Positions 15,368 to 58,046 of a stretch of DNA of 64,000 nt are shown piece by piece (position 1 is the stretch's first letter; each line of letters begins with the position of its first letter). The notes beneath the pieces are model-generated. The model saw nothing but the letters and a program-made list of their open reading frames with translations. It had not been told where the DNA came from and made no database searches. The position numbers and the translations under genes are program-made. The DNA comes from Oopsacas minuta (lineage: Eukaryota; Animalia; Porifera), in contig JAKMXF010000277.1 of NCBI GenBank assembly GCA_024704765.1, forward strand, positions 248,001-312,000, read 5' to 3'.

Positions 15368-16500
15368 ATGGCAACCAATATATTCGTAAATAATGAAGGT
15401 CAAATTAATGCAATGCTAAAATCAGCAAAAAAAGGTAATTGGGATGTAGTTTTTGATATCCTTGAAAACAAGCCTTCTCTTGTTAACTGTATTTCCTCAG
15501 ATAAGGCTTGGGGTGTGCTCCATCAAGCTGCATGGATGAATTTATTCCCTGTTGTAAAACGACTAATTCAAATACCTGGATGTGATCCAGCTATTGAAAC
15601 GAGACGGGATTACGCACGTAAACATGGACCTGGAAAACTCCACGTGAACTATCCACAAATCATGGAATACAGTGTTACCTCCTTGAGGCAGAGAGAAGAT
15701 CAAGTTTGTGCTCTCCAATGTCTATCGCTCCAACATTTGTCCTCATACAAAGTGAACTCGAGTTGACTGGGAAAACACTTTCATTGGCATTATCATGCTT
15801 CAAAAAGGTTCTTTTTAGTCATCTTGAATTTAAGAATGATCATTCATTCACTTTCATAATGAGAACGATTTTTCAAGAATGTCTGACTAATTGGCAAAAG
15901 ATAAAAAACAAAATTTGCATTGCCTTAGAAGGACATAATTCCCAAATGTCGAAACTTTTGAAACATGGTTTTCCTTGTAAATTCGATACTATGGAACTAT
16001 TTTTTAGCCGTGTTATTTACGCATATACTAATGAAAGAGATAGCATATATGATAGCTTGAATGCAACTCTTGCTGCCCAAGCAAATCCACAATACACCCC
16101 CAAAGGTCATGATATTGCCCTTGCAGGGTATGCAATACTATTGAATGCTATTTTAATGAATTGGAAATCATTGAATAAATGTAAAAGATACACTTATCGT
16201 TGTATGGGATTACATCCTTATGATATATCACAATATCAAGTTGGGAGGAAATTCACTTGGCTCAGCTTCATATCCAGTTCAATAGATAAGAATGTAGCAC
16301 AAATATTCACTGACAAAAATCTGATACAAGTGACATTTATTATAGAGAACAAGTCTTGTAATCGTTGGTCACCGAGGTATATTGGAGATCATTCAGCCTT
16401 TCCAGATGAAAATGAATGTTTATATCCTTGTGGAACAAGTTTTGTTGTAACTAGAGTGAATGGATTGAAAATTTATTTGAAACTTTGTAATTATTATTGA
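15368..16500 (+). CDS. Ankyrin-like repeat + ARTC (R-S-ExE) mono-ADP-ribosyltransferase, about 377 aa, split by a 1-nt frameshift at 15634-15637
   Basis: Ankyrin-like LHQAAW..VVKRLI..GCD. Restoring one A gives GKTPRELS and joins the two ORFs. Catalytic motifs YR (16195-16200), SSS (16272-16280) and ENE (16408-16416). No signal peptide. Confidence 0.75.
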
Positions 16501-17049
16501 TTTAGTTTTTATTGGAACTTTTAGTTTGTTACTTGTATATACAATAAGAGTATGTTTTTCGTTGTTTTGGAAATAAAATGTATAAACTAGCTATTTGCTC
16601 GGTGAGGTTTGTAATATTACAGTTAAATTGTGTATTTTATCTATTTGAATGATCACAAACTATTAATTCATATTACGTAATTACGTGTATATATATGTGT
16701 AGAATACTCCATACACAAGATGTATAATATTTAGCGGGATCCATTGTACTAACATTATCCACTTATCATAACACTATTCTCATATCAAAATACTGAAAGC
16801 TGTTTTAATTACAAAAATTATTATCCTAACAACAATGAATATTCACATTATAAAATTCACAAAACTTTTGGTTTAATCTTAGTATTTAACACAGAGTTTT
16901 ACTGTAAATATATTCCAATGAAATATGCATTATTAATTATTTATGTTCTTTAAGATTCAAACTGTAATTCACATTGAACTTTATGATATTACCAGGAAAG
17001 ATACCATCTAGTTAAAACCAGTAGAGTTATGAAACACAGATTGTGGAGG

Positions 17050-17140
17050 GGCGCTTTGTGAGTGAACTAGCAACCTTGAATATTATATTCTCAGGTCTCA
17101 CTGCTCTGACTAGTTTGGATACTAATAATTTGGAATTTAG
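17050..17140 (+). pseudogene. Isolated LRR-A gene fragment (copy at 25524-25614)
   Basis: Matches the LRR-A segment ctttgtgagt..atattctcaggtctcac and carries the same internal deletion as the relic at 24645-24730. Confidence 0.75.
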
Positions 17141-17679
17141 CAATACACCATGTGTTATTTTGTGATAATTATTATATGAGATTAATTTGGGAAGAATTAG
17201 AGGGAACATTACATATAGGTATGTCATTATATGTGGTATCTCTCTACCTTATACAAAATACAGTATAACTCGGATAGTTACAGTCATATATGGATACAAA
17301 AATCTGATCCGTGAGACTCACGTGAGTAGGCTGTGAGAGTGGGCATCTCGGGTATCACTCGATAGTTCTTAATTCTCAGATGAGTTATATGGATCACCAA
17401 TTGTGATCTATGGTCCACTTAAGTAGAAACAGCTCGCCACGCTACAGGATATACATGCATTTCTCGCCTCCTAATTCACAGTAGATACTTTATCTATGAC
17501 TACTGGGCATTTAACAGTAATGTGTATTTCACTGAAGTATCTATGTTTTGTCTGTAATATTGAAGAGATAAATTCACATAAAATTTATGTAAATGATTCT
17601 TCACTCAATTTTTTCTCATATTACATAATACTACCACAATTAGTGTATAAATATCTCTAAAGTATATGAAGTAATACCT

Positions 17680-17687
17680 TATAAATA
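17680..17687 (+). promoter_or_regulatory. TATA box of LRR-A1 (same motif at 24110 and 26154)
   Basis: CCTTATAAATAGGG conserved about 60 bp upstream of the ATG in all three paralogues. Confidence 0.55.
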
Positions 17688-17744
17688 GGGATATCACTAT
17701 AGCTAATATATATTGAATATTTGAATTGAAGCAAGATATTAACA

Positions 17745-19275
17745 ATGAAGAGTAGAGCTAGTAGTATCTTAGCATGTGTTGGATTGTTTGTTGTGTATTT
17801 GATAGTAGTTGAGGCTGTCTGTTGGATAAACTGTCCTACTGAGTCAATTGGTTCATTAGAGCCCCTTCTGTTACCTGAATGATGATGGAGGTTCTATGTA
17901 TTGTGAGATTAGAGTGTATACATCTGGATTAAATGGACTGACTAATAATTGGACTCAAATCAAGCTAGTTATTAATGTAACAAATCGTATCAGGGAAATT
18001 GGGATCGATTCACGCTTGTCAGATTATCAGTTAGAAATAAATGCTTATCGTCAATTCAATAGTATAATAACTTTCACATCAAGTTCTAATAATCATATAG
18101 TATCACCATCGGTACTTACCTCACTTCCTAATCTTGTACACTTTTATATGTGGCGTGGAAACTTCTATCATTTTCCTATATTTTCACTTTTCAACAAACA
18201 ACTAACTCTTCTCGCTCTATATTCTTTCGGGATTCGATCAAATGCCCCAGTAATTAGAAGCCGCTTTGTGAGTCAATTACCCAATCTAGGATATCTCTAT
18301 CTCTATCCTAATAATATGTTGGTGGTAACTGAAAATATATTCTCAGGTCTCACTACTCTTAAATATTTGTACACTGAAAATTTGCAACTAAGATATCCAA
18401 TCAGAACACTATCTCCACTCGTTAGGCTGAAAAGATTGAGTATTCGTTACGCAGGTTTATCTGAAATAGATTTTCTAAAGCAAACTCCCTCGCTATACCA
18501 GTTAACCAGTATTAGTTTCTGGGGTAATAATATTCACTCATTTAACACTGATGTCTTCTCTGATTATACTCAATTAGAGAGTCTAGAATTGAAGACAAAC
18601 TTCATTGCTATTATAAACAGAACAAACGTTAATAAATTGTTCAATCTGGATTTTCTACGTCTTGGTTACAATCAAATATCAACAGTTCCTGAAGACTCAT
18701 TCAGAGATATGCCTCAACTTCGAATAGTTGCTTTATCTGACAATCAAATCACAACTATTTCTAGCAAAGTATTCGAGCATCTGTCTAACATTGAAAGAGT
18801 ATATTTGTCGAACAACCCATTTCATTGTGACTGTAGGTTAGAATGGATGTCAATTGTAAGTCACAAATACGATATAGATTTCGAAGATCCATCCTGCAAT
18901 ACTCCACCAGAACATAAAGGTAAATCAGTATTGTTACCATCTCTCTACACAAACTGTACTAGAGAGCTATCTTATCAGTGTTTCAACAAATCAGTTAAAT
19001 GTCCAAGAGGTTCTTACTGTCAGGATACACTACATAGCTATGAGTGTGTGTGTGAAGGAGAAGGAGTAGTTTTCTCCACCTCACTTAACAGCTGTATTGA
19101 CTATGAGAAACTCATACAAACAACAAAGTCGTTATGTGGAGAATATGTATTGGATAGTAATGGTCATTCGAACTGCACTCCATCAACCAATGTCGTTACT
19201 ACCCATGCGCCAACTTGTCCAGTACAACCTGTAACGGAAGCAGATAAAACTCCTACTAGTCTTCCTCCTATATAA
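17745..19275 (+). CDS. LRR-EGF protein family A, copy 1 (signal peptide, about 10 LRRs, LRRCT, EGF, Pro/Thr stalk); extra C at 17862-17865
   Basis: ATG 17745 (MKSRASSILAC) matches the paralogue at 26219. GAGCCCC here vs GAGCCC there shifts the frame. LxxLxLxxNxI repeats, NPFHCDCRLEW, EGF CPRGSYCQDTLHSYECVC. Confidence 0.85.
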
Positions 19276-20454
19276 CAAGTACTTCTTCCCATTAATCATA
19301 CTTATTGTAATATTTTATTGTTAGTTTTAGAGCTAATCAATTCTGGTGCAAACCATTGAGTATTGATAGACTTGAATTACTATAAGTATGATTCACGATG
19401 TGCTGATTGAGATTGGATGAATAGTTTCCTGCAAGGTATTTCAAGATTATTTGTTCGTTATTTGTGGTGAGTTAAGTATATATTTGTTCATTGTTATTCA
19501 AAATGTTGGTTATTCATCAAAAATATGTGGCATTTCTCTTTTCGTCAAATAATTGCATAAATATACTCAATACAATTTGAATGGAAAATTGACCGTGACA
19601 CATCTAAACCAAAGTCCGCAGAAATGATCCTTAAGAGCATAATAACAGAATGTGTATTCATTGGGCATAACTGCCAACCAAGCAGAGAATGCTAACCTAT
19701 TATGTCATATCCATGTACAGTGCCCTCATTTTCCAACCCCATAATTTTCCTCGCTCGATGAGCTCCTAGTCTTACACCAAAGATCAGTTACACTACATAC
19801 TAACAGCTATTTTGTGCACAGTGTGATTTTGTCTCTCCGAATCAGGTTTGTTATGGAACAGCTCATGCCAATTACAATGAATATGTTTCCTCAATAACGT
19901 ATGGAATCTAGTTTCAACCAAAAGAGTTATGAATCACGGACTGTTCAGGGAATCCTTGTACTGTTGAATATGAACTGCTAATTTACATAACTAAATGTGC
20001 ATGTATATGTATTATTAGACTCATAATTAGTCTCCACCAAAAATCCTTGTACATTTGTACTAACTCCCTGTACGCCTATACAGAACTAACAATGGGCAAA
20101 ATCCCTGTCCGGCTGGCAGGTAAGATTGAGTAGTTAGACTTTCTCTTCCAGGAGTGCTATAGGATGTTTAGAAATGATTGAAGATGGAAATATCTTCAAA
20201 TAACTTTTACGGTCTGATTGAACCATTTGTATTCATTTGATTAGATAAGTATTTGTATAAATATTCAAAAACTTGGCCAAAATCTATAATAATATTTGAA
20301 ATAACGGAAAAAATGTGAGGCAAATTGATTGCATTATAGACTGATTGAATTCTTGTATTATACTGAGTCAGGAGTTCATACATTTAGAACGTCATTGTGC
20401 CTAAAGATTGTTATAAAAGGCTGTAATTTGTATTTCAGTTCAACAGGCCTTACA

Positions 20455-21927
20455 ATGAAATTAATATTAATAGTTCTTGTATTCACTCTTGCAGCAAATG
20501 TATTCGCAGAAATTGAGAATGAACAACTTAAACTAGAGTTAGAAAGCATTAAGCTAGAATTAAATGAATTAAAGGATCAGATGAACACTGTTTCAAGAGA
20601 GACAAGGCAAACATTGAACTGTACTTGTCCGCCAGGTCCAGTAGGGGAGAGAGGAGAGATTGGAGCTCGAGGACCAGATGGAGCACCAGGTCAAACTGAA
20701 AATCCGGGATATCCAGGCGAAACGGTACCAAAAGGCGATCCGAGACCTTCAGACCCACTGGGACCTCCAGGCCCACCGGGACCTCCAGGTCCACCGGGAC
20801 CTTCAGGCACTCCAGGATTTACAGGAGCTCTGGGACCTTCAGGCGCTCCAGGAATAAAAGGAGATCGTGGATTTCAGGGTTCACAAGGTTATCCTGGTTT
20901 TCGTGGGGTACAAGGATACAAGGGAGAAAGGGGGGACGTAGGAGAAATTGGACCGATTGGACTACATGGTCCATTTGGAGTGAAAGGTGAAAGAGGGCCT
21001 CCAGGAATAACAGGAATAACAGGAGATCCGGGACGTTCAGGTGCTCTAGGAATAAAAGGAGATCGTGGAGTGGACGGAGTTGAGGGTCCAATTGGGTTCC
21101 CTGGTGCAAAGGGAGAAGTAGGAGATGATGGAGAATTTGGACTCAAAGGTGAAGTAGGTGACCAAGGCCCACGTGGACCTCCAGGTTTTGCAGGAGACGC
21201 TGGACGACCTGGGATTGATGGATTTGATGGGATTCCAGGTGAAACAGGACCTGCAGGAACAAAGGGATCACAAGGTGATCGTGGTTTTCATGGGGTACAA
21301 GGATACAAAGGAGAAAGGGGGGACGTAGGAGTAATTGGACCGATTGGACCACGTGGTCTATTTGGAATGAAAGGTGAAAGAGGGCCTCCAGGAATAACAG
21401 GAATAACAGGAGATCCGGGACGTTCAGGCGCTCCAGGAAGAACAGGAATAACAGGAGATCCGGGACCTTCAGGCGCTCCAGGAAGAACAGGAATACCAGG
21501 AATAACAGGAGATCCAGGACCTTCAGGCGCTCCAGGAATAAAAGGAGATCGTGGAGTGGACGGAGTTGAGGGTCCAATTGGGTTCACTGGTGCAAAGGGA
21601 GAAGTAGGAGATGATGGAGAATTTGGACCCAAAGGTGAAGTAGGTGACCAAGGCCCACGTGGACCTCCAGGTTTTGCAGGAGACGCCGGACGACCTGGGA
21701 TTGATGGATTTGATGGGATTCCAGGTGAAACAGGACCTGCAGGAACAAAGGGATCACAAGGTGATCGTGGTTTTCATGGGGCACAAGGATTAAAAGGAGG
21801 AAAGGGGGACATAGGAGTAATTGGACCGATTGGACCACATGGTCCATTTGGAGTAAAAGGTGAAATAGGGCCTAGAGGTAGGAAAGGGATCAAAGGAGAG
21901 AAAGGAGATAGTTTTATAAGGTGGTGA
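20455..21927 (+). CDS. Short-chain intronless collagen 1 (signal peptide, coiled coil, RETR, CTC, long Gly-X-Y domain), 490 aa
   Basis: ATG 20455 matches the paralogue at 44549; TATAAAAG at 20412; long Gly-X-Y run; no C-terminal globular domain. Confidence 0.92.
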   Translation: MKLILIVLVFTLAANVFAEIENEQLKLELESIKLELNELKDQMNTVSRETRQTLNCTCPPGPVGERGEIGARGPDGAPGQTENPGYPGETVPKGDPRPSDPLGPPGPPGPPGPPGPSGTPGFTGALGPSGAPGIKGDRGFQGSQGYPGFRGVQGYKGERGDVGEIGPIGLHGPFGVKGERGPPGITGITGDPGRSGALGIKGDRGVDGVEGPIGFPGAKGEVGDDGEFGLKGEVGDQGPRGPPGFAGDAGRPGIDGFDGIPGETGPAGTKGSQGDRGFHGVQGYKGERGDVGVIGPIGPRGLFGMKGERGPPGITGITGDPGRSGAPGRTGITGDPGPSGAPGRTGIPGITGDPGPSGAPGIKGDRGVDGVEGPIGFTGAKGEVGDDGEFGPKGEVGDQGPRGPPGFAGDAGRPGIDGFDGIPGETGPAGTKGSQGDRGFHGAQGLKGGKGDIGVIGPIGPHGPFGVKGEIGPRGRKGIKGEKGDSFIRW

Positions 21928-22024
21928 AATTCCAATTTACTTTTGGTTAAATTCTATTGTATACCTTTTACTTACTTTTTTAGTTCTTATTTTTGGAGAA
22001 AGATGTATGCATGTAAATCAATCA

Positions 22025-22420
22025 TTAATTGGGACAAAATTTCCGCTTAATTGGGACAAAATTTCCGCTTAATTGGGACAAAATTTCCGCTTTATTGGGA
22101 CAAAATTTCCGCTTAATTGGGACAAAATTTCCGCTTAATTGGGACAAAATTTCAGCTTAATTGGGACAAAATTTCCGCTTAATTGGGACAAAATTTCCGC
22201 TTAATTGGGACAAAATTTCCGCTTAATTGGGACAAAATTTCAGCTTTATTGGGACAAAATTTCAGCTTAATTGGGACAAAATTTCCGCTTAATTGGGACA
22301 AAATTTCAGCTTAATTGGGACAAAATTTCAGCTTAATTGGGACAAAATTTCAGCTTAATTGGGACAAAATTTCCGCTTAATCGGGACAAAATTTCAGCTT
22401 TATTGGGACAAAATTTCTGC
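22025..22420 (+). repeat. Minisatellite: 18 x 22 bp (TTAATTGGGACAAAATTTCCGC)
   Basis: Exact 22-bp period with no spacers; variants at only a few positions. Confidence 0.95.
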
Positions 22421-22552
22421 TTATTAAACAGGGAACAACGTAGTTCACGCACAATGCGTATGCAATGCAACCTTAAGTACAATATACATGATTGCCTAAA
22501 CATTGAAATGAATCCAATATTGTTACGAGTAGACCTGTCGCTTAAATTTCAA

Positions 22553-23775
22553 ATGGCCAAACGTAATGACCTAACGCTTCCTGACAAAATTCATATACTT
22601 GAAAAGATCAAGTTGCAGCCACCCCAATCTAGAACTTTGCGTTTTCTCTCTGACCTGTTCTCAATCCCCAAATCCACAATTGGAGACTGCTTAAGCGGAA
22701 GAGAAGCGGTGAACACATCCAGGAAGAGGGAAAGAGATGGGAAAGATCCAGAAATTGATGTAGCACTAAATCAATGGTTCAAAACTGTCCTTCATAAAGG
22801 GTAAGAATTAGTGGATTGGTATTGAAGACCGAAGCAGAGGAATTCGCTAAAAAATTGGGCAGACATGACTTTATTGCGACTGAAGGTTGGTTATCCCGAT
22901 GGAAGGGCCGTTACCAGATCAAATCTAAGCATCTCACGGGGAAAAAGCAAGTGCCGACTTAGAGGGAGCAGAAAAATGGAGATTAACAATACTCCCTGAG
23001 TTTCTTAGAGAATATGACCCCATAACATATATATATATGCTCTGATTAGAGATAATCGTAAAATCTTACTACTAATCGATAACTGTCCTGCACATCCTTA
23101 AATGAAATCACTCAGAAATATTCGACTAGAATTTCTCCCTGTAAATACGACCTCACTCATACAACCTTTGGATCAAGGCATTATCAAAAACCTGAAAACT
23201 TTCTATAGGAAGGAATTGATCCAGATGATCATAAGGTTATTGATGAAAATGTAATCAACTCCTCAGTTACAGCCATCGATATTAGTTCCAAAATTTCGCT
23301 TCTAGATGCTATATACTTCCTTGCTATAAGCTGGCGACTTGTGAAACAGGCTACTATTGCTAACTGTTTCCACAAGTCCGTGTTCGGAACACTTGAAAAT
23401 GTAGAAGAGTCTGAATTGATAGATGAGAAACGAGTCTTAAAAGAGGTGACAAACGGAGATGACTATCTGAACATTGACAAAGATGCTCCATGCTTTGATG
23501 ATTCATGTAACTGAGATGATGATGTTATTGAGGGGATTATAAGTAAACGGGCTTGTGTTCAGGGTGACTCAGAAGATGACGAAGAAGAAGTAATTGTTCA
23601 ACCAGTGGTTTCTCATGCTATAGCCACGGAGTCAATTCAAAACTTGCAACGATATTTTATTGAACAAGGATTTTGTGATGTATCACAAAAAGCATTAGAT
23701 ACCTGTGCTGAAGTAATATTTACAAGACTTCTATCGAGCAAGAAGCAAACCACTATTGAGAAATATTTTTCTTGA
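22553..23775 (+). pseudogene. Tigger/CENP-B-like transposase pseudogene
   Basis: HTH MAKRNDLTLPDKIHILE, CENP-B HTH (GWLSRWK), DDE_1 motifs IDNCPAHP and IQPLDQGII, tail KQTTIEKYFS. Has stops, frameshifts and an internal deletion. Confidence 0.9.
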
Positions 23776-24173
23776 CTTCCCTTAACATTCGTGTGTAGTT
23801 TCAGTCTGGTACACTATATTAGGCAGTAACATTATTTGTTTAATTCTATTTATTAGTGATTATCATCAAAATTGTTTCCAGAAATGCCAAACAATCCGGC
23901 ATCCAAAATTTCAATTTTCTTACTTTAGGTGGGTATGGCTCAATCATACAGTGGATATATTGCTTTATGCAATTATGGGGTCTGTGACTGAAAAATAAAG
24001 AATCCCTGCTATATTATCATTAACATGATTTCTCCGGTTAATCGGGACAAAAGGCCTGGAACAGATGTGTTCCGATTAAGCGGAGTTGATTGGATATGGA
24101 GAAATACCTTATAAATAGGGTATCACTATAGCTAATATACATTGAATATTAAAATTAAAGCAAGATATCAAGA

Positions 24174-24845
24174 ATGAAGAGTATAGCTAGTAGTATCTTA
24201 GCATGTATTGGATTGTTTGTTGTGTATTTGATAGTAGTTGCGGTTGGCTGCTGGATAAACTGTCCTACTGAGTCAATTGGTTCATTAGAGCCTTTCTGTT
24301 ACCTGAATGGAATTCTAGGGACTGTGAGATATATGTGTATAATCAGAGTAAATATACTTACTGAGTATCAGATTTGGAATGAAATCAAAGTCGTTACAAA
24401 TGTAAGAGATCGTATCAATACTATTAATAAATGCTTATCGTCAATTCCATCAAATTCCTCTTTCAGGTCATTCTTCAATAATCATATAGTATCACCATCA
24501 CTACTAACCTCGCTTCCTAATCTTAATAGCCTTCAAATGATCGATGGTAATTTTTATCGTTATCCTATTTTTCAGATTTCAACACACAACAAACGTATCT
24601 CTATTGGGAGATCGTGTTTCTATCAAATGGCACAGTAATTAGAGGCCGCTTTGTGAGTGAAGTAGCAACCTTGAATATTATATTCTCAGGTCTCATTGTT
24701 CTTACTAGTTTGGATACTAATAAATTGCAATTGATACATCACTCAAAATACTATCTCAACCTGCTAGGTTGAAGGCATTAAGTATTCAGAAGGCAGAATT
24801 ATCTGACATAGAATTTTTAAAGAAAACTCCATGGCTGTGCCAGTT
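24174..24845 (+). pseudogene. LRR-EGF family A relic (5-prime part, frameshifted and deleted)
   Basis: MKSIASSILAC start and the same promoter; decays and joins the ART remnant at about 24846. Confidence 0.85.
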
Positions 24846-24950
24846 ATTCATCCTTCCAATATGAAAAAGAATGATTATATCCTTGTGGGATAAGTTTTGT
24901 TGTAACTGGAGTGATTGATTGAAAAATCGTTAGAAACTTTCTAATTAGAA
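24846..24950 (+). pseudogene. Remnant of the ART C-terminus
   Basis: Matches 16391-16500 (gaaaatgaatg..tatccttgtgg..agttttgttgtaact). Confidence 0.75.
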
Positions 24951-26218
24951 ATATTTAGTTTTGATTTGAATTTTATTTGTCATTTGTAAATATTTTAAGA
25001 GTATTTATTCTATGTTTTTGGAATGAAAAATTATTGACTAGCTTTTGCTCGGTGAGGGTTCTACTTATTACAGTCGAATTTGTAGTTTTTGTCCATTTGA
25101 ATGACGACAAACTATTGATTCATAATACGTAATTACGTGTATATATATGTGTATATATTGGATTCCCATATTATAGAATACTCCATACACAAGATGTATA
25201 ATATTAAGCGGGATCCACTGTACTAACATTATCCACTTATCATAACACTATTCTCATATCAAAATACTGAAAGCTGTTTTAATTACAAAAATTATTATCC
25301 TAACAACAATGAATATTCACATTATAAAATTCACAAAACTTTTGGTTTAATCTTAGTATTTAACACAGAGTTTTACTGTAAATATATTCCAATGAAATAT
25401 GCATTATTTATCTTTTATGTTCTTTAAGATTCAAACTGTAATTCACATTGAACTTTATGATATTACCAGGAATGATACCATCTAGTTAAAACCAGTAGAG
25501 TTATGAAACACAGATTGTGGAGGGGCGCTTTGTGAGTGAACTAGCAACCTTGAATATTATATTCTCAGGTCTCACTGCTCTGACTAGTTTGGATACTAAT
25601 AATTTGGAATTTAGCAATACACCATGTGTTATTTTGTGATAATTATTATATGAGATGAATTTTGGGAGAATTAGAGAGAACATTACATATAGGTATGTCA
25701 TTATATGTGGTATCTCTCTACCTTATACAAAATACAGTATAACTCGGATAGTTACAATCTTATATGGATACAGAAATCTGATCGGTGAGACTCACGTGAG
25801 TAGGCTGTGAGAGTGGGCATCTCGGGTATCACTCGATGGTTCTTAATTCTCAGATGAGTTATATGGATCACCAATTATGATCTATGGTCCACTTAAGTAG
25901 AAACAGCTCGCCACGCTACGGGATATACATGCATTTCTCGCCTCGTAATTCACAGTAGATACTTTATCTATGAGTATTGGGTATTTAACAGTAATGTGTA
26001 TTTCACTGAAGTATCTATGTTTTGTCTGTAATATTGAAGAGATAAATTCACATACAATATATGTAAATGATTCTTCATTGAATTTTTTCTCATATTACAT
26101 AATACTACCACAATTAGTGTCTAAATATCTCTAAAGTATATGGAGAAATACCTTATAAATAGGGATATCACTATAGTTAATATATATTGAATATTTGAAT
26201 TGAAGCAAGATATCAAGA

Positions 26219-27778
26219 ATGAAGAGTATAGCTAGTAGTATCTTAGCATGTGTTGGATTGTTTGTTGTGTATTTGATAGTAGTTGAGGCTGTCTGTTGGA
26301 TAAATTGCCCGAATGAGTCAATTGGCTCGTTAGAGCCCTTCTGTTACCTGAATGATGATGGAGATTCTACGTATTGTGGGTTTATAGTGTTTATATCTGA
26401 CTTAAATGGGCTGACTAATAATTGGACTAAAATCAAGCTCGTGATAAATGTAACAGATCGTATCAATTATATCGAGATCTATTCAGGCTTGTCAGATTAT
26501 CAGTTAGAAATAAATGCTTATCGTCAATTCAATAATATATCAACTTTCCAATCAGGTATTAATAATCACATAGTATCACTATCTTTACTTACCTCGCTTC
26601 CTAATCTTGTATACTTTTCTATGTACTATGGAAACTTCTATCATTTTCCTATATTTTCACTTTTCAACAAACAACTAACTCATCTCAAACTCAATTATTT
26701 CGGGATTCGATCAAATGCTCCAGTAATTCGAAGCAGCTTTGTGAGTGAATTACCAAATTTAGAATATCTCTACCTCTATTCTAATAATAAGTTAGTGGTA
26801 ACTGAAAATATATTCTCAGGTCTCACTGCTCTTACTTATTTGTATACTCATAATTTGCAACTAAGATATCCAATCAGAACTCTATCTCCACTTGTTAGGC
26901 TGAAATATTTGAGTTTTGGTTGCGCAGGTTTATCCGAAATAGATTTTCTAGAGCAAACTTCATGGCTATCCCAGTTAAACAGTATGAATTTCTGGGATAA
27001 TAACATTCAGTCATTTGACACTGATATCTTCTCTGATTATACTCAATTAGAGAGACTAGAATTGGACACAAACTCCATTACTATTATAAACAGAACAAAC
27101 TTTACCAAATTGGGCAATCTGGATTTTCTACGTCTTGATTACAATCAAATAACAACAGTTCCTGAAGACACATTCAGAGATATGCCCCTTCTTCAAATAG
27201 TTGATTTATCTGGCAATCAAATCACAACTATTTCTAGCAAAGTATTCGAGCATCTGTCATACATTGATAGAGTATATTTATCGAGCAACCCATTTCATTG
27301 TGACTGTAGGTTAGAATGGATGTCAAGTGTAAGTCACAAATACGATATATATTTCGAAGATCCATCCTGCAATACTCCACCAGAACATAAAGGTAAATCA
27401 GTATTGTTACCATCTCTCTACACAAACTGTACTAGAGAGCTATCTTATCAGTGTTTCAACAAATCAGTTAAATGTCCAAGAGGTTCTTACTGTCAGGATA
27501 CAATACATAGCTATGAGTGTGTGTGTGAAGGAAAAGGAGTAGCTTTCTCCACCTCACTTAACAGCTGTATTGACTATGAGAAACTCATACAAACAACAAG
27601 ACCGTTATGTGGAGAATATGTATTGGATAGTAATGGTCATTCGAACTTCATTCCATCAACCAATGTCGTTACTACCCATGCACCAACTTGTCCAATACAA
27701 ACTTGTCCAGTACAAACTTGTCCAGTACAACCTGTAACGGAAGCAGATAAAACTCCTACTAGTCTTCCTCCTATATAA
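26219..27778 (+). CDS. LRR-EGF protein family A, copy 2, intact, 519 aa
   Basis: Uninterrupted ORF with signal peptide, LRRs, LRRCT, EGF and a stalk with TCP(I/V)Q repeats. Confidence 0.9.
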   Translation: MKSIASSILACVGLFVVYLIVVEAVCWINCPNESIGSLEPFCYLNDDGDSTYCGFIVFISDLNGLTNNWTKIKLVINVTDRINYIEIYSGLSDYQLEINAYRQFNNISTFQSGINNHIVSLSLLTSLPNLVYFSMYYGNFYHFPIFSLFNKQLTHLKLNYFGIRSNAPVIRSSFVSELPNLEYLYLYSNNKLVVTENIFSGLTALTYLYTHNLQLRYPIRTLSPLVRLKYLSFGCAGLSEIDFLEQTSWLSQLNSMNFWDNNIQSFDTDIFSDYTQLERLELDTNSITIINRTNFTKLGNLDFLRLDYNQITTVPEDTFRDMPLLQIVDLSGNQITTISSKVFEHLSYIDRVYLSSNPFHCDCRLEWMSSVSHKYDIYFEDPSCNTPPEHKGKSVLLPSLYTNCTRELSYQCFNKSVKCPRGSYCQDTIHSYECVCEGKGVAFSTSLNSCIDYEKLIQTTRPLCGEYVLDSNGHSNFIPSTNVVTTHAPTCPIQTCPVQTCPVQPVTEADKTPTSLPPI

Positions 27779-29007
27779 CAAGTACTTCTTCCCCTTAATC
27801 ATACTTATTGTTACTATTTTATTGTTAGTTTTAGAGCTAATCAGTTCTGGTGCAAACCATTGAGTATTGATAGACTTGAATTTCTATAAGTATGATGCAC
27901 GATGTGCTGATTGAGATTGGATGAATAGTTTCCTGCAAGGTATTTCAAGATTATTTGTTCGTTATTTGTTGTGAATTTAGTATATATTTGTTCATTGTTA
28001 TTCAAAATATTAGTTATTCATCAAATATATGTGATATTTTCTCTTTTACCAAATATTTGCATATAATATACTCAATACAACTTTGATAGAGAAAAGCCCG
28101 GGGCACTTCTGAACCAAAGTCAGCAGAAGTGTTACTAAAGAGTATAATCACAGAATGGGTATTCATTGGGCATAATTGCCTCAACCATGGCAGAGGATGC
28201 AAACCTATTTATGTCATATCTCTACACGGAGCACAAATTTTCCATAGACATTGGTCAAAATCCCTGTAAACCCTAGAAAGTTTTTCTGGCTCGCTAAGCT
28301 CGCCTGAAAAACTTTACTAGCGTTAGTTATACCACCTCCTGAGGTAATATCTAGAAAAGTAACATTTGGTTGATCATTATTGAAGATAATGTCCTACTAA
28401 ACAAAAGAAACTCTAACTACTTTCGCAGAGCTGGTATTAACCAGAACACTTTAAGATCCGTGCTGCCGGCCTGTACTATACGAATATACAAAATATCCAT
28501 TAGGATTAGTCCTGGTAAAGTAGGTATCAGTACGTATTTTCTAGAATCCTGGGAACTAGTTTCCCGTTAGATACTGTAGGCCGCAATAATATTTTGAGTC
28601 TGAACAAGATGAGTCACAGAGGCAATATCTTGAATTAAGTAAGAAATCAACTAAATGAAAGAATGTAGGAAATCTTAAAATTGGGTGAATATGGCAGAAA
28701 TGTGCACTTGGTAGGTCGTCTGGGCTGCCCTAAATTTCCGGGGGCCCGTGTGGTTTACGATGTCTATGCTGAGAAGTGAGAACAATAAGTCGACCATTTT
28801 ATTACTGAGCCACGATATCCTATGTAAAATTGTATACTGGATAGTCGGCACGACAAGTTATACAAATGTTTATATGGATTACAGGGAAAATTTCATGAGA
28901 ATTCTGAAATAGAATTGAGAGAGAATTTCGGATGTTTGATAAAAGTATATATGAATCCTAATTATCTTGTAGAAACGTGATAAGAGTAGAGTCAGGTGTC
29001 ATATCAA

Positions 29008-30417
29008 TCACAACAATAACATCAACACTATCAACACCAGGAATATGCCTTGAGGTACTAGTTTGTTGACACCTGAACATGTATACATATCAGAATCCAG
29101 AGTATATCCAGGATTACAAGAACAGTTGTAAGATCCTACAGTATTGGTGCATATTTGCGAACAGTTACTTGAGTTCAAAGAACATTCATCTATGTCAACA
29201 CAGGTGTTAGTTTCAGATTCGAATTCATATCCAGCTTCAGTACAATCACAATATGCACTAGTAGGAGTATTAACACAAACACTATCTGATGGACAGATGA
29301 AGGTATCATTGAAACAATGAAAAGATTGTACAGGGCAATTAATGTAGTTCGAACTATCCGTGATAGAATTGCCATTCAAAAGAACCGGTGTAGAACATAA
29401 GCCCTCAATTCTCCAACCTAGATTATGTGATACATGACTAAGCCAAGCCAAATCACAGTTACAATTAATTGGATTCGAAGTTAAATATACATCAATTAGT
29501 GATTTCTGTCTCGCAAAGAATTCCTGATCTAGTGTTATTAAATTGCATGACAATGCAAATAAGCACTCAAGTTTTGGGAATGTGTAGTTGAGTAGGAAAT
29601 TCATATTTATTGAATGAGATATTATTAGAGTCTCCACACCGTTCAGTCCAATAAATGCATCCTCCTCAATAACTATATCTACTGAATCTACTAAGAGAAC
29701 TATAGTGTTGATCCTCGCAGAATTTGCAAATAGAGGGCTGGGATATCTCTGTATTGGAAAGACACGCATATCAGTTATATTTCGAGCATTATCGAAAGCA
29801 TTATCTGCTAGATCAAACCATATAGCATCAGATGACTGTACAATATTTAAGAAATACAATTCAGGCTGATTTAACATTGCAGAAGTGACTGTAGCTACAG
29901 AAGGAAGTATCAGTGAAACCAATTGAATATATCCAAGTTGGCTACTGTAGAATACAGGAAATCCATCGAGTGTAAGATCATAAAGATATATAGCCCTCAG
30001 GTTAGAAAAACCGATCAGAAAATCTTTACTAACGTTTAGAATATCGCCTGAGGTAACTAATAGAGCTTCAACATCTGGATGATCAGTTTTGAAAATTAGT
30101 TCAATGTTTGCATCAAGAGGGTCTATATCAAGATATGCTATTCCGGGAGCAATCTCCACTACAATCGTCTGGTGATCTAGTCCTTGGATCTGAAATTCAT
30201 TGCAATCAAGATTAGGATATAGCTCTTTATAATATCTTGAGCAGTTGTAGATCAGGTCGTGAGCTTTGGCAGGATCACCAGTGGTAATCATACACCGTAA
30301 GACATTTTCAGAAGGAAAGGAGCAATCCACTTCTGAATCATCACACGTAATTCCTCTGACTGTATTAAGTGATGCACATAAAAATACAAAAAATGATATG
30401 GAGGAAATAGATAGCAT
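29008..30417 (-). CDS. LRR-EGF-cbEGF protein family B, copy 1, probable GPI/TM anchor
   Basis: Signal peptide from ATG 30417, degenerate LRRs, NPINCNCDLAWL, cbEGF CVDIDEC..CSCNPGY, hydrophobic C-terminus. Confidence 0.88.
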   Translation of the reverse strand: MLSISSISFFVFLCASLNTVRGITCDDSEVDCSFPSENVLRCMITTGDPAKAHDLIYNCSRYYKELYPNLDCNEFQIQGLDHQTIVVEIAPGIAYLDIDPLDANIELIFKTDHPDVEALLVTSGDILNVSKDFLIGFSNLRAIYLYDLTLDGFPVFYSSQLGYIQLVSLILPSVATVTSAMLNQPELYFLNIVQSSDAIWFDLADNAFDNARNITDMRVFPIQRYPSPLFANSARINTIVLLVDSVDIVIEEDAFIGLNGVETLIISHSINMNFLLNYTFPKLECLFALSCNLITLDQEFFARQKSLIDVYLTSNPINCNCDLAWLSHVSHNLGWRIEGLCSTPVLLNGNSITDSSNYINCPVQSFHCFNDTFICPSDSVCVNTPTSAYCDCTEAGYEFESETNTCVDIDECSLNSSNCSQICTNTVGSYNCSCNPGYTLDSDMYTCSGVNKLVPQGIFLVLIVLMLLL

Positions 30418-30986
30418 TGTATGAAGAATTGTATACAAGTTGAGTAGCAATACACACAAATTTAACATACAAGTGTATGTAAACAAGTATATACGTATGT
30501 TGGTTGTGTAAAATCAATATAAATTCACATAATTTGTCAAGGTTTGTCATACATGCCAAACAAAGTGCATACTAACTCGGGACAGATTAATGCAATTTCA
30601 TGGGACATTTGGTCATTTCCCGGTACGTCGCGGGAAACTCGGAACCAAAAATTTCGTATTGAGAAACTCACCGAACTTAGGTCAAATGTTGATTAGATAA
30701 TCTGTAACTGAAATCATTACTCTCAATCAAAAAGTACTTATAGCAGTAATCATAATTCAAGAGTAATATTAGCAGTATTCTCCCATTTTTCCCGGGGCGA
30801 TTATCTCGCTAGGAATAGTGAGAATCGAAGCCAATAGATGTTTAAATAGAGATGTAATACAATCTATAATATTTGATCCTATAACAGATAATATGCTCAT
30901 ATGTATTTGTATATAACAAGCCTATACTAGTGTGCATGTATTAAGTTTGTTTGTAATTCGACTTAACTTTCGTTTTCATAGTTACA

Positions 30987-32399
30987 ATGTTAACAATATC
31001 CTATCTATCAATTCTTGTACTATTCTTCATATCACGTAATACAGTGTACAGTGGAAATACTTGTATAACTTCTGAAATATCTTGTTTTTTTACTGAATAC
31101 ACCCTATCTTGTGATGTTACCACCAATGACTCAAGTATAGCTAGCTCAATAATATCCTTTTGTTCGGCATATTTCTCAACCACATTTCCTCCTTCCAAAA
31201 CTTCCCAACTATTTAATGTCCAACAAATCGATCAGCAAACTATTGATATAGAGATCGACCAGAGAGTGCTGAGTCTTGATTTAATCGTTGAAGGAAATAA
31301 TGTAATCGTCTTCAATACTGATCATCCAAATGTTACAACTCTAAAGATTACCACCAACGGGAGTCTAACTGCGAGTAAAGATTTTCTAAGCGGTTTCTCC
31401 AACCTACAGTATGTATATCTTGAATTTCTTACACTCGATGGATTCCCTGTATTCTATACTCAACTTATAGAAATTCGTTTGGATTCACTGATACTACCTT
31501 CTGTAGTTACAGTCACTTCTGCAATGTTAAACCAGCTGATATTGATAAAATTAACCATGATACAGACATATGTTGCACAATGGTTTAATTTAACTGGGAA
31601 TGCCTTCGATAATGCTACATATATCACAGATATGACTCTCTATGGAATACAAAGATATCCCAGTTTTCTATTTGCTAATATTGTGAATCTCCAAAATCTA
31701 TCTCTCATTGTAGATTCACTGGACACAGAATTTGAAGATGATGCATTTATTGGATTGGATGAATTAGTGATTCTGAGAATATCTAATTCAGTAAATATGG
31801 ATTTTCTACTCGAATATACATTCTCAAAACTTGTGACATTAATAGTAGCATCATGCAACCTAACAGCACTAGATCAGGAATTCTTTGCAAGACAGAAATC
31901 ACTAATTGAAATATATTCAAGTTGGAATCCATTTGAATGTGGTTGTGATATGGCCTGGCTTAATTACGTATCAGTGAATCTGAGTTGGACAGTTGATGGA
32001 ACTTGTTCTACCCCAGTAGATGTGGATGGCAATTCTATCACGAATAATTCAAACTATATTGGCTGCCCTCTACAATCTTTTGGGTGCTTCAATGATACAT
32101 TTATCTGTCCATCAGATAGTATTTGTGTTAATACTGCTTCTAGTGCTTTTTGTGATTGTACCGAAGCAGGATATGAATTCCAAAATGAAACTAACACCTG
32201 TGTTGATATAGATGAATGTTCTATTTCCACAGATAACTGTCAACAAATATGTACCAATAATAATGGATCTTTTATCTGTTCTTGTGAACCTGGGTATACT
32301 CTGGATACAGATATGTCTACCTGTTCAGGTGTCAACAAGCTAACATCCCAAGGTATACTCCTGCTGGCGATAGTGTTGATGTTGCTATTATTGATTTAA
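30987..32399 (+). CDS. LRR-EGF-cbEGF protein family B, copy 2, probable GPI/TM anchor, 470 aa
   Basis: Same architecture as B1; [12 protein letters not shown]; ends [24 protein letters not shown]. Confidence 0.9.
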
Positions 32400-36341: not shown

Positions 36342-37625
36342 TCAAATCAATAACAAACACATCAACACAAACACCAGGAATAGTATGCCTTGGGATGTTA
36401 GCTTGTTGACACCTGAACAGGTGTTAGTTTCATTTTGGAATTCATACCCTGCTTCAGTACAATTACAAAAAGCACTAAGAGCAGTATTAACACAAATACT
36501 ATCTGATGGACAGATAAATGTATTATTGAAGCACTCAAAAGATTGTAGAGGGCAGCCAATATAGTTCGAACTATTCGTGATAGAATTGCCATCCACATCT
36601 ACTGGGGTAGAACAAGTTCCATCAACTGTCCAACTCAGATTAACTGATACGAAATTAAGCCAGGCCATATCACAACCACATTCAAATGGATTCCAACTTG
36701 AATATATTTCAATTAGTGATTTCTGTCCCGCAAAGAATTCCTGATCTAGTGCTGTTAGGTTGCATGATGCTACTATTAATGTCACAAGTTTTGAGAATGT
36801 ATATTCGAGTAGAAAATCCATATTTACTGAATTAGATATTCTCAGAATCACTAATTCATCCAATCCAATAAATGCATCATCTTCAAATTCTGTGTCCAGT
36901 GAATCTACAATGAGAGATAGATTTTGGAGATTCACAATATTAGCAAATAGAAAACTGGGATATCTCTGTATTCCATGGAGAGTTATATCTGTGATATATG
37001 TAGCATTATCGAAGGCATTCTCAGCTAAATTAAACCATTGTGCAACATATGTCTGTATCATGGTTAATTTTATCAATATCAGCTGGTTTAACATTGCAGA
37101 AGTGACTGTAACTACAGAAGGTAGTATCAGTGAATCCAAACTAATTTCTATAAGTTGAGTATAGAATACAGGGAATCCATCGAGTGTAAGAAATTCAAGA
37201 TATACATACTGTAGGTTGGAGAAACCGCTTAGAAAATCTTTACTCACAGTTAGACTCCCGTGGGTGGTAATCATAAGAGACGTAACGTTTGGGTTGTCAG
37301 ATATGAAGACTATTTCATTATTTCCTTCAACGATTAAATCAAGACGAACTACTCTCGTATCGATCGACACGTTAATCGTCTGCTGATCGAGTTCTTGGAT
37401 ATAGAATTGTTGAGAAGTTCGATTACTATTAAAAAAATATTCCGAACACTCGGAGATTACGCTGCTAGCTTTCTCTGCGTCGTTATTAGTGGTAATATTG
37501 CAATATATTGCAAAGGATTCAACGGTACATGATATTTCACCAGTATCACAAGGAGCTCCACCCAATACTATGTCAAGTGATGTGAACAAAAATACAAGTA
37601 TTAATAAAGAAGAAATTGATAGCAT
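36342..37625 (-). CDS. LRR-EGF protein family B, copy 3 (cbEGF module deleted), probable GPI/TM anchor
   Basis: Signal peptide from ATG 37625; core near-identical to B2; ends [11 protein letters not shown]. Confidence 0.9.
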   Translation of the reverse strand: MLSISSLLILVFLFTSLDIVLGGAPCDTGEISCTVESFAIYCNITTNNDAEKASSVISECSEYFFNSNRTSQQFYIQELDQQTINVSIDTRVVRLDLIVEGNNEIVFISDNPNVTSLMITTHGSLTVSKDFLSGFSNLQYVYLEFLTLDGFPVFYTQLIEISLDSLILPSVVTVTSAMLNQLILIKLTMIQTYVAQWFNLAENAFDNATYITDITLHGIQRYPSFLFANIVNLQNLSLIVDSLDTEFEDDAFIGLDELVILRISNSVNMDFLLEYTFSKLVTLIVASCNLTALDQEFFAGQKSLIEIYSSWNPFECGCDMAWLNFVSVNLSWTVDGTCSTPVDVDGNSITNSSNYIGCPLQSFECFNNTFICPSDSICVNTALSAFCNCTEAGYEFQNETNTCSGVNKLTSQGILFLVFVLMCLLLI

Positions 37626-38246
37626 TGAAATATGATAGAAAAGAGTTGATGAGGAGAATTTAATTACAAAAGGCATATGCACGTTTATATAAACTCAGTG
37701 GCTATATGACATATCCAAAATCCCCACATGATATACATATTAAGATCGCACATAGTGTTTTCAGTTCCGGTGTGAATTAATATACTAAGGATAGCATGAT
37801 AATACAAAGAATTTTTAGTACAGCTCTTATCCGATAAATCCAATCTGGGAGATATGAGAAGTCTTCATGGAAGTATCGATTTGTGTAATTGTGAATTGGC
37901 CATATATAACGATTTCACATAGATTACTATGTCGTATTAGGTATTACATGGTTTCCCTCACTAATATTTATTACATATGATTACAGCCTTTTCATCGTTG
38001 TGTAGCATTCGTATATCACTTATCTAAATGATATTATATTTAATTGTACGAGGATTTACGCAGTTACTTTAAAAACATTATATATTGATGATGTCAGTGG
38101 ATAAGACTATATACTACCAGTTAATAATGATAATATAGACGTTATTTAAAGAAATATAGATTACACATATATACATAGTTAGAATAACTATATAATAATA
38201 TAGGAAAAATGGGACCACCAAAATAGCAATAAATAATATTAGAAAA

Positions 38247-42328: not shown

Positions 42329-43087
42329 TTACCTATATGGGTCTATCGATCTACCTTTTTCTCCAGTTCCTTTATATACGTAATAACTGATCCCTTTCTG
42401 TCCCTTCTCACCTTTCGCACCTTGTGGTCCAGTGACTCCAGTACTGCCTTTATAACCGGGTACTCCAGGTGACCCTGGTTCACCATTTGTACCAGGAAAT
42501 CCAGGTGGCCCAGGATAAGCAGGGAAGCCTTGGGGCCCGATTGTTCCTTTAGCACCAGGGTAACCCTTTGGACCCGGCGTACCTTCTGGTCCGGTTTCAC
42601 CCTTCGCCCCCTGATCACCCGTGTCTCCTTTGAGCCCTTTTGGACCTGGCGCGCCTTCCCTACCATCAATACCAGGTTTTCCTGGGATTCCGATTGCTCC
42701 AGGAATTCCTATAGAGCCTTCTCGCCCCATAAACCCAGGGAGGCCGATATCACCTATGTCTCCTCCCCGACCCTTTGTACCTTTCTGACCTTTAAACCCT
42801 GGGATCCCCTGACTACCATCATCCCCAGCTGAACCTTTAGTACCCTTTGTACCATCTGTGCCGTGCTGTCCTACATTTCCAACCTCTCCTTTCTGTCCTT
42901 TCTGTCCAGCACAAATACAATCTTCCACACTTCTCTTATCTCTTGTTAAACTATCAACCTGACTCTTCAACTGTTCTATCTCAATTCTCATTTCTTCCAT
43001 TTGAGTCATAAATATCTTTTCATCTAATGCTCCAGTTGTTATTACAATATTTGTAATAACAATGAGAATAAATATTGTGATTTTCAT
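42329..43087 (-). CDS. Short-chain intronless collagen 2 (signal peptide, coiled coil, RDKR, CIC, Gly-X-Y), 252 aa
   Basis: Uninterrupted Gly-X-Y run of about 59 triplets. Confidence 0.92.
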   Translation of the reverse strand: MKITIFILIVITNIVITTGALDEKIFMTQMEEMRIEIEQLKSQVDSLTRDKRSVEDCICAGQKGQKGEVGNVGQHGTDGTKGTKGSAGDDGSQGIPGFKGQKGTKGRGGDIGDIGLPGFMGREGSIGIPGAIGIPGKPGIDGREGAPGPKGLKGDTGDQGAKGETGPEGTPGPKGYPGAKGTIGPQGFPAYPGPPGFPGTNGEPGSPGVPGYKGSTGVTGPQGAKGEKGQKGISYYVYKGTGEKGRSIDPYR

Positions 43088-44548: not shown

Positions 44549-45214
44549 ATGAAATTAATATTAATAGTTCTTGTATTCACTCTTGCAGCAAATGTATTCG
44601 CAGAAATTGAGAATGAACAACTTAAACAAGAGTTAGAAAGCATTAAGCTAGAATTAAATGAATTAAAGGATCAGATGAACACTGTTTCAAGAGAGAAAAG
44701 GCAAACATTGAACTGTACTTGTCCGCCAGGTCCAGTAGGGGAGAAAGGAGAGATTGGATTTCCAGGACAAGATGGAGTACCAGGTCAAAATGGAGAAACG
44801 GGACCTCCAGGCGCTCGAGGAATAAAAGGAGATCGTGGAATGGAAGGAGTTGAGGGTCCAATTGGGTTCACTGGTGCAAAGGGAGAAGTAGGAGATGATG
44901 GAGAATTTGGACCCAAAGGTGAAGTAGGTGCCCAAGGCAACCCTGGACCTACAGGTTTTACAGGAGACTCCGGACGACCTGGGATTGATGGATTTGATGG
45001 GATTCCGGGTGCAACAGGACCTGCAGGAACAAAGGGATCACAAGGTGATCGTGGTTTTCATGGGGCACAAGGATTAAAAGGAGGAAAGGGGGACGTAGGA
45101 GAAATTGGACCGATTGGACCACATGGTCCATTTGGGGTAAAAGGTGAAATAGGGCCTAGAGGTAAGAAAGGGATCAAAGGAGAGAAAGGACGTCATTCTT
45201 TTATAAGGTGGTGA
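44549..45214 (+). CDS. Short-chain intronless collagen 3 (signal peptide, coiled coil, REKR, CTC, Gly-X-Y), 221 aa
   Basis: Close paralogue of collagen 1 including promoter (TATAAAAG at 44504) and 3-prime UTR. Confidence 0.92.
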   Translation: MKLILIVLVFTLAANVFAEIENEQLKQELESIKLELNELKDQMNTVSREKRQTLNCTCPPGPVGEKGEIGFPGQDGVPGQNGETGPPGARGIKGDRGMEGVEGPIGFTGAKGEVGDDGEFGPKGEVGAQGNPGPTGFTGDSGRPGIDGFDGIPGATGPAGTKGSQGDRGFHGAQGLKGGKGDVGEIGPIGPHGPFGVKGEIGPRGKKGIKGEKGRHSFIRW

Positions 45215-57850: not shown

Positions 57851-58046
57851 TTGAGTGACTTCTCTTCTAGTTATATTAGAATGAATTTTAGAATATCTTT
57901 AGCGGAATATAGAAGATTTACACAATTTTTACAAAATACACAAATTCAGATCCTTAATACAAAATACATTACACATAACTATCATGAATAAATTCTTACA
58001 TCTCATTATAAATGTGAGTGCTAACTTTAAATTCTACGATGGCCTA

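Follow-up and report, generated by a model that had tools for sequence, protein, structure and literature searches.

Do two neighboring leucine-rich repeat (LRR) genes of a glass sponge differ mainly where they would bind a ligand, and if so, is selection the reason? The question is raised by 64,000 nucleotides of the Oopsacas minuta genome (GenBank assembly GCA_024704765.1; contig JAKMXF010000277.1, here C277, positions 248001-312000), a stretch that we refer to as the window and that carries the related genes LRR-A1 and LRR-A2. An original prediction, made from the sequence, held that these paralogues vary almost only on the concave, ligand-binding face of their repeats, in the manner of agnathan variable lymphocyte receptors (VLRs) and plant LRR receptors, and that they form a variable recognition receptor family. 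The window is part of a 61.5-Mb genome in 365 contigs, whose compactness has already been published (PMC10280926). We found that the concave-face pattern separating A1 from A2 is real and far from chance. LRR-A is likely a lineage-specific tandem family diversified by positive selection on a predicted binding face, which would make its members candidate variable recognition proteins. The two genes, in window coordinates, are the following.

17745-19275, forward strand: LRR-A1, with an ATG at 17745 and an LRR-to-stalk frame open from 17896.
26219-27778, forward strand: LRR-A2, an open reading frame (ORF) of 519 codons and the sole fully intact LRR-A copy.

The modules encoded by LRR-A2 are, in order, a predicted signal peptide, an N-flank capped by Cys residues, about 13 strands of LRRs, an LRRCT-like cap, a six-Cys EGF-like module, a small beta module, and a (T)CP(V/I)Q stalk. 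The repeats matched Pfam LRR_8 (E = 9e-27) and LRR_4 (E = 9e-19), and the Pfam scan returned no other domains beyond this single LRR domain and one EGF-like module. The latter has the Cys spacing C-x6-C-x5-C-x8-C-x-C-x13-C and two beta-hairpins in the structural model; its best Pfam match was hEGF (E = 0.011, 16.6 bits, below the 29.3 cutoff). Four Cys lie in the N-flank, at positions 26, 30, 42, and 53, and the signal peptide was judged by eye from a V-x-A directly before the first Cys. The C-terminal cap has the motif NPFHCDC...C...C and a model helix at 363-375, while Pfam LRRNT and LRRCT gave no match on the excised A2 cap segments, even at E = 10. An AlphaFold model based on a 41-sequence alignment (predicted local distance difference test [pLDDT] 87.3, predicted template modeling score [pTM] 0.80) contained strands at 52-57, 84-89, 109-113, 132-136, and 155-163, continuing through 327-329 to 351-353 at a spacing of about 24 residues. 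A2 is modeled as a curved solenoid with a parallel beta-sheet on its concave side, of the capped extracellular LRR type. Its best Foldseek matches were LRRTM2, Nogo receptor, FLRT2, Lingo-1, and TLRs, with a probability of 1.0 to Nogo receptor, LRRTM2, FLRT2, and TLRs. We defined ten LxxLxLxxNxL units at amino acids 130-372, spaced 23 to 28 residues apart, and took positions 2, 3, 5, 7, and 8 of the ten repeats (50 residues) as the concave set.

All seven beta-strand pairs and three linkers quoted in the original prediction are present in the ORFs at 17896-19275 (A1) and 26219-27778 (A2), though the list of strands omitted two less variable repeats (LGYLYLYPNNM/LEYLYLYSNNK and LDFLRLGYNQI/LDFLRLDYNQI). 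Between A1 and A2, 26 of the 50 concave residues differ, compared with 23/193 in the rest of the LRR domain (Fisher p = 7e-9). By the Nei-Gojobori method, the concave positions have a nonsynonymous divergence (dN) of 0.345 and a synonymous divergence (dS) of 0.12, a ratio of 2.9, against 0.44 at other LRR sites; comparison of the concave nonsynonymous proportion (pN) with the synonymous proportion (pS) of the whole LRR region gave p = 0.003. Differences affect 21/79 residues at amino acids 51-129 and 4/87 in the LRRCT and EGF-like module, and replacements total 81. The expectation that the two genes differ almost only on the concave face was right as to a strong concave excess but too absolute, as the five x positions account for about half of the replacements in the LRR domain.

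Searching the genome in all six frames brought the near-full LRR-A copies to five, all on C277, with A4 (L003), A5 (L004), and A6 (L005) about 100 kb downstream. Across all 10 pairs of these copies, concave dN was 0.35 to 0.56 and LRR dS 0.07 to 0.16, giving ratios of 2.6 to 6.6, with dN/dS (omega) of 0.4 to 1.2 at other LRR sites. Resolved by repeat position, pN was 0.43, 0.37, 0.44, and 0.34 at positions 3, 5, 7, and 8 and 0.19 at position 2, compared with 0.02 to 0.17 at the remaining positions and a mean pS of 0.106. The original prediction had proposed contrasting dN/dS at xxLxLxx positions with the rest, and equivalent codon models gave omega above 1 at the x positions. A fixed-sites model of the five paralogues yielded omega of 4.8 at xxLxLxx and 0.68 in the rest of the LRR domain, in support of the diversifying-selection pattern likened to VLRs and plant LRR receptors; the likelihood-ratio test against omega = 1 gave 2dlnL = 74.5 (p = 6e-18), and two omegas were favored over one at p = 3e-39. 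Counted as minimum changes, nonsynonymous to synonymous stood at 85:4 for concave codons, compared with 62:31 for the other codons of the LRRs (p = 4e-7). The LRR-B paralogues of the same window served as an internal control, and each third of these genes had an omega below 1.

Site models with no prior partition pointed to the same surface. M2a was preferred to M1a (2dlnL = 132, p = 2e-29), with 10.5% of sites at omega 9.3. Posterior probabilities above 0.95 were assigned to 22 sites: 12 belong to the predefined x set, nine lie on the three N-terminal strands (52/54/56, 84/86/90, and 111/113/114), and the remaining one is G299; none falls in the LRRCT or EGF. Mapping onto an AlphaFold model, also proposed in the original prediction, placed 21/22 selected sites on concave-sheet strands. 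They occupy alternate residues of the modeled strands, and the N-terminal strands share the register of about 24 residues, so that in the model these three strands extend the concave sheet. In composition, Tyr makes up 18.4% of concave positions compared with 1.8% elsewhere, and Ser, Asp, Glu, Arg, His, and Gly are enriched there as well.

The pattern could also be followed outside O. minuta. In European Nucleotide Archive (ENA) assemblies, a word-indexed protein search identified about 25 homologues whose identity was 43 to 51%; the same search found LRR-A relatives only in O. minuta and these assemblies, followed by generic LRR proteins at ≤31% identity. Two contigs from these assemblies were examined, and both contain tandem arrays: array X (L031, ERZ25766962), with four open genes, and array Y (L032, ERZ25071281), with six complete open genes and one partial gene. 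Within the two arrays, concave dN exceeded LRR dS in 21/21 pairs, with ratios of 1.1 to 3.0 and omega of 0.19 to 0.50 at other sites. Maximum likelihood gave a concave omega of 2.66 for the six genes of array Y (p = 3.5e-12) and 2.51 for the four genes of array X (p = 8.5e-5). Entropy across 24 homologues was 2.19 bits at concave positions compared with 1.00 bit elsewhere (p = 4e-15), peaking at positions 3, 5, 7, and 8. As the same excess is found in open genes of both arrays, pseudogene decay is excluded as its cause.

What, then, keeps the remainder of A1 and A2 so similar? Both genes sit within an old duplication, seen by self-BLAST as a 3.4-kb direct repeat (16391-19735 against 24846-28244, 90.4% identity over 3408 nt). 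Along it, A1/A2 identity runs 82%, 97%, 88%, 97%, and 79%, with sharp edges between the segments listed here.

16391-19735, forward strand: duplication block copy 1, with the 3' end of an ART gene, the upstream region, LRR-A1, and the 3' flank.
24846-28244, forward strand: duplication block copy 2, containing LRR-A2.
Outer 5' flank: A1/A2 identity 82%.
16700-17830, forward strand: homogenized 5' tract of A1, upstream DNA and signal peptide, 97.0 to 98.8% identical to 25174-26304.
25174-26304, forward strand: homogenized 5' tract of A2, with TATAAATA at 26154-26161, about 60 nt 5' of the ATG (read from the sequence).
17831-18812, forward strand: variable tract of A1, from the LRRNT strand to LRR10, 88.0% identical to A2 26305-27285, dS 0.14, dN 0.115 to 0.128.
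26305-27285, forward strand: variable tract of A2, containing all 22 M2a sites with posterior > 0.95 (amino acids 52-332).
18813-19521, forward strand: homogenized 3' tract of A1, with LRRCT, EGF-like module, stalk, and 3' region, 96 to 98% identical to 27286-28025.
27286-28025, forward strand: homogenized 3' tract of A2, counterpart of 18813-19521.
Outer 3' flank: A1/A2 identity 79%.
24094-24846, forward strand: A3 relic, a divergent N-terminal fragment with about 71% nucleotide identity to A1/A2.

Between A1 and A2, dS drops from 0.14 across the LRRs to 0.02 over the C-terminal part (p = 0.002). Because dS falls together with the identity profile, the near-identity of the upstream DNA and of the LRRCT and EGF-like module is mainly due to recent homogenization, by conversion or crossover, and is not evidence of constraint. 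The near-invariance described in the original prediction is itself accurate, at 97.0% for the upstream DNA (16700-17744 against 25174-26218) and 4/87 residues for the cap and EGF-like module, but it mostly reflects that homogenization. In other copy pairs, C-terminal dS is 0.02 to 0.13, near the LRR dS. Exchange extends to the family as a whole: each of the 10 ways to pair the five copies is backed by informative sites, the four-gamete test finds 59% of site pairs incompatible, adjacent sites are more compatible than shuffled ones in a PHI-like test (p = 0.013), and region trees (iqtree) are star-like, mutually discordant, and weakly supported. The discordant pairings and incompatible sites indicate that the copies are mosaics, which makes single-tree site models anti-conservative. 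The partition and pairwise tests are robust to recombination because their interleaved site classes share the same history.

Most of the copies also bear lesions. Frameshifts affect three of the five near-full copies, A1, A5, and A6. That of A1 is one extra C in the run at 17859-17862 (+1, C homopolymer), which shifts the reading frame past codon 40; the ORF at 17896-19275 starts at an internal ATG at 17896, and the stalk repeats have an in-frame deletion of 30 nt. As assembled, A1 is not an intact gene. In A4, an in-frame deletion of 126 nt precedes an early stop; A5 has a 2-nt insertion within the EGF-like module, and A6 has deletions of 1 nt and 53 nt. Public O. minuta gene models are artifactual for 4/5 LRR-A copies: the A1 model (P0002, 583 aa, ISLR2-like) fuses the LRR part to the upstream ankyrin/ART gene and so bypasses the frameshift, the A5 model gets past its frameshift by means of a false intron that runs through the EGF-like module, and those of A4 and A6 are truncated.

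Truncated N-terminal relics accompany the full copies. The 3' end of the A3 relic coincides exactly with the start of duplication block 2, and such relics adjoin A4, A5, and A6 too, the flanking fragments being 44 to 64% identical. Further relics of the divergent A3-type subfamily, consisting of a signal peptide and about 100 to 140 aa, were noted at L033 3112-3609 (reverse strand), L034 2115-2621 (forward), and L034 9259-9606 (reverse). Inside the second LRR-A cluster, Tc1/mariner transposase-like ORFs were recognized by eye at L033 975-2002 (reverse strand), beside a Rab-like GTPase fragment. We also observed an LRR-A derivative without amino acids 58-421 (L021 1261-1671, reverse strand; C277:379657-380067), whose out-of-frame junction is flanked by two (S/T)YC microhomologies. 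The derivative has the same 2-nt insertion as A5. This shared insertion shows that the A5 lesion is real and not an assembly error, and that it is older than a duplication or was copied by conversion.

Could the concave excess have arisen with no selection on the binding face? A neutral mosaic, in which the A1/A2 flanks were recently converted and the LRR tract retains older divergence, fits an LRR dS about seven times the C-terminal dS (0.14 vs 0.02), non-coding upstream DNA that is 97% identical, and the sharp tract edges, and it accounts for the regions that looked invariant between A1 and A2. It leaves the periodicity inside the LRR tract unexplained, however, where interleaved classes have omega of 4.8 and 0.68 and concave dN exceeds dS in 10/10 pairs; moreover, pairs with similar LRR and C-terminal dS give the same pattern. 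As a sole cause it is largely refuted, and we regard it as very unlikely. Replacements might alternatively be the neutral decay of pseudogenes in a dying family under relaxed constraint, given the frameshifts of A1, A5, and A6, the early stop of A4, the A5 lesion that is demonstrably real, and a non-concave omega near 1 in some pairs. Yet decay predicts omega of about 1 everywhere, not 2.6 to 6.6 at concave sites against 0.4 to 1.2 elsewhere; the A2-A4 pair, with neither gene frameshifted, has a ratio of 2.6, and the open genes of arrays X and Y show the same concave excess, all of which makes this account highly improbable. The assembly itself, a hybrid of Illumina and PacBio reads made with SPAdes (PMC10280926), could have mixed or collapsed paralogues or haplotypes into false mosaics and frameshifts. 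Stretches of 100% identity over 300 nt do abut diverged ones, and the A1 frameshift lies in a C homopolymer, but chimeras would not target exposed-residue codons with a 24-amino-acid period, the pattern recurs in two assemblies from another assembler, and the A5 frameshift recurs at a second locus; we consider an artifact extremely unlikely.

A different doubt concerns not whether the diversification is real but what it serves. The proteins might function in matrix or cell adhesion, like small leucine-rich proteoglycans, for instance with the short-chain collagens encoded nearby. Such genes lie near A1 (20329-21927) and at 42329-43087 (reverse strand) and 44549-45214 and are likewise duplicated, and the structural neighbors LRRTM2, FLRT2, Lingo-1, and Nogo receptor are adhesion or guidance LRR proteins. 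A sustained omega far above 1 with a Tyr/Ser-rich surface is a better fit to arms-race or self/non-self systems, though: high omega together with a Tyr/Ser-rich binding surface characterizes plant R genes, VLRs, and antibodies, unlike matrix binding. The surrounding genes (TRAF-type zinc finger, ARTC, RBR E3) also look immune-like, and we consider an adhesive role unlikely.

Positive selection on a binding face used in recognition, the reading that we hold to be probable, draws on several processes that the sequences show in LRR-A genes, each read here as a single long ORF. Exposed concave beta-sheet residues (x in LxxLxLxx), rich in Tyr and Ser, have repeatedly come under diversifying selection, while purifying selection keeps the hydrophobic framework, convex side, caps, and stalk. 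Exchange among paralogues, both within the array and with the second array about 100 kb away, homogenizes flanks and shuffles LRR segments, and copy birth and death leave frameshifted copies with truncated relics alongside. The concave sheet would be the ligand-binding site, to judge from solved LRR-ligand complexes of the structural neighbors, and the family may provide a germline-encoded repertoire against variable targets such as microbes, food particles, or conspecific tissue (allorecognition). LRR-A has no intracellular signaling domain, so signaling would need a partner; a short membrane tail is possible. The designation as a variable recognition receptor family fits the selection seen on the predicted binding face, but "receptor" goes further than this, as there is no signaling domain and membrane anchoring is putative.

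Several points weigh against this interpretation. The family in O. minuta may be largely decaying, with only A2 fully intact and A4 stopping early, and partly relaxed constraint is compatible with the omega of 0.7 to 1.2 seen at non-concave sites. Because M2a assumed one tree despite recombination, its p-value and its list of sites are inflated to some extent. Our codon models were run in our own GY94/F3x4 likelihood implementation and not in codeml or HyPhy, and "concave" was assigned from the LRR motif register and DSSP strands, not from measured solvent exposure. Finally, the recognition role is deduced from gene sequences and should be read as putative.

Conversion between complete copies, possibly drawing on relics, might also run somatically and so generate variable receptors per sponge or per syncytial lineage. 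The mosaic paralogues, the relics beside every full copy, and the LRR-less derivative would be compatible with this idea; the relics, at 44 to 64% identity, look too diverged to be recent donors, and we give the idea only a very slim chance. If true, a non-bilaterian would have a functional counterpart to the VLR assembly of agnathans.

A possible membrane anchor lies just past the A2 ORF, in two putative elements.

27734-27782, forward strand: putative intron of A2, 49 nt, GT..AG, inferred; A1 counterpart at 19231-19279.
27783-27863, forward strand: putative last exon of A2, encoding the hydrophobic tail YFFPLIILIVTILLLVLELISSGANH, then a stop.

Splicing of the 49-nt segment would link the stalk in frame to the tail, leaving six residues after the hydrophobic stretch. 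The tail frame is kept in A2, A4, A5, and A6. Its 20-codon hydrophobic core has five point differences, of which four fall at third positions and are synonymous in that frame; the fifth, T>N, adjoins a deletion in A1. The A1 counterpart of intron and tail, at 19231-19360, has a 1-nt deletion in the tail. The putative exon thus suggests a membrane-tethered LRR-A form. In array X, a hydrophobic stretch follows the stop in the +1 frame but is accompanied neither by a plausible short GT..AG intron nor by synonymous bias, and no hydrophobic tail was found in array Y; as neither array has a supported tail, it is not demonstrable as a family-wide feature.

GC content is 33 to 39% in most 2-kb windows of the stretch and 44% across the collagen gene, and the long ORFs encode SETD2-, PTP-, collagen-, TRAF-, RBR-, and LRR-type proteins. 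A second LRR family, LRR-B, occupies 29008-30486 (reverse strand), 30987-32399 (forward), 36342-37682 (reverse), 50063-51517 (reverse), and 58044-58562 (reverse), and combines irregular LRRs, LRRCT, cEGF/EGF_CA, and an in-frame hydrophobic tail. Its members B2 and B3 are nearly identical in their middle third (dS 0.017), with dS of 0.6 in the N-terminal third, and are another conversion mosaic, of polarity opposite to that of LRR-A. The products of the three short-chain collagen genes have a signal peptide and, at the N-terminus, a coiled coil; the one at 20329-21927 has internal direct repeats spaced 387 and 486 nt, shares segments of 88 to 94% identity with the gene at 44549, and is directly followed by a tandem repeat (22025-22423, 66-nt period, about 95% unit identity). 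The ORF at 15706-16500 matches Pfam ART (NAD:arginine ADP-ribosyltransferase, E = 2e-8), and its last 110 nt reappear, about 82% identical, where the A2 duplication block begins, from 24846 onward. Two nearly identical TRAF-type zinc finger genes stand head to head at 45945-47225 (reverse strand) and 47537-48799 (forward). With these, ART, and RBR E3, the gene content of the region looks immune-like.

Sponges recognize non-self and manage dense microbial communities, and demosponges are the source of most of their known candidate receptors (NLRs, SRCR proteins, and aggregation factors). The very compact genome of a glass sponge is seen here to have a small LRR family with one of the clearest footprints of diversifying selection, and LRR-A proteins are concrete candidates for immune or allorecognition receptors in Hexactinellida. 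Our literature searches found no report of the family, and the terms "LRR" and "leucine" are absent from the text of the O. minuta genome paper (PMC10280926), as are "LRR" and "leucine-rich" from that of the Aphrocallistes vastus genome paper.

How does LRR-A compare with known systems? The best structural matches, proteins of the Nogo receptor/LRRTM/FLRT/Slit type, have in common with it a capped solenoid of "typical" LRRs of about 24 residues, and two copies carry NCBI names of this kind: "slit isoform X3" (A4, as Slit) and "ISLR2-like" (A1). Sequence identity to these proteins is only 14 to 26%, however, LRR-A is without the four-domain Slit layout and without an Ig or FN3 domain, and those families are conserved where LRR-A is hypervariable. 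Identity as Slit, which has four LRR domains, multiple EGF repeats, LamG, and a CT knot, was rejected on the single LRR domain and one EGF-like module. In the expanded TLR and LRR-only repertoires of sea urchin, amphioxus, and bivalves, LRR ectodomains have likewise multiplied in lineage-specific tandem arrays, and positive selection in the LRRs has been reported. LRR-A differs in being without a TIR or cytoplasmic domain and in being small: O. minuta has five copies besides the relics, and the other assemblies have at least four to seven per array. A Toll/TLR assignment was also rejected: Pfam gave no TIR match in LRR-A, the ORF ends within the stalk, and the tail exon would leave only six residues past the hydrophobic stretch.

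Agnathan VLRA/B/C resemble LRR-A in the predicted order of signal peptide, LRRNT-like cap, LRRs, LRRCT-like cap, Thr/Pro-rich stalk, and possibly hydrophobic tail, and in the concentration of diversity on a Tyr-rich concave sheet. LRR-A genes are nevertheless complete in the germline, without a VLR-like incomplete gene with intervening sequence or hundreds of cassettes, and have an EGF-like module that VLRs are without. We rejected LRR-A as a VLR on the complete germline ORF of A2 and on the nature of the flanking fragments, relics of 44 to 64% identity, and rejected kinship with VLRs because the top Foldseek matches are not VLRs, a TLR5-VLR hybrid appearing only at rank 12. Plant LRR resistance proteins (Cf-4/9 receptor-like proteins and the LRR domains of NLRs) are likewise encoded in germline tandem arrays subject to birth and death, with dN > dS confined to exposed x residues and paralogue exchange shuffling the variants. 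They have no homology to LRR-A beyond the LRR motif; LRR-A, unlike them, has an animal-type ectodomain with putative LRRNT and LRRCT caps, an EGF-like module, and a stalk, and is without an NB-ARC domain, a kinase, or the plant-specific LRR subtype. LRR-A would add an independent, early-branching case of a conserved scaffold with a hypervariable concave face, as in plant R proteins and lamprey VLRs. It belongs with them to a functional class under concave-face diversifying selection, and this class is not a homology family.

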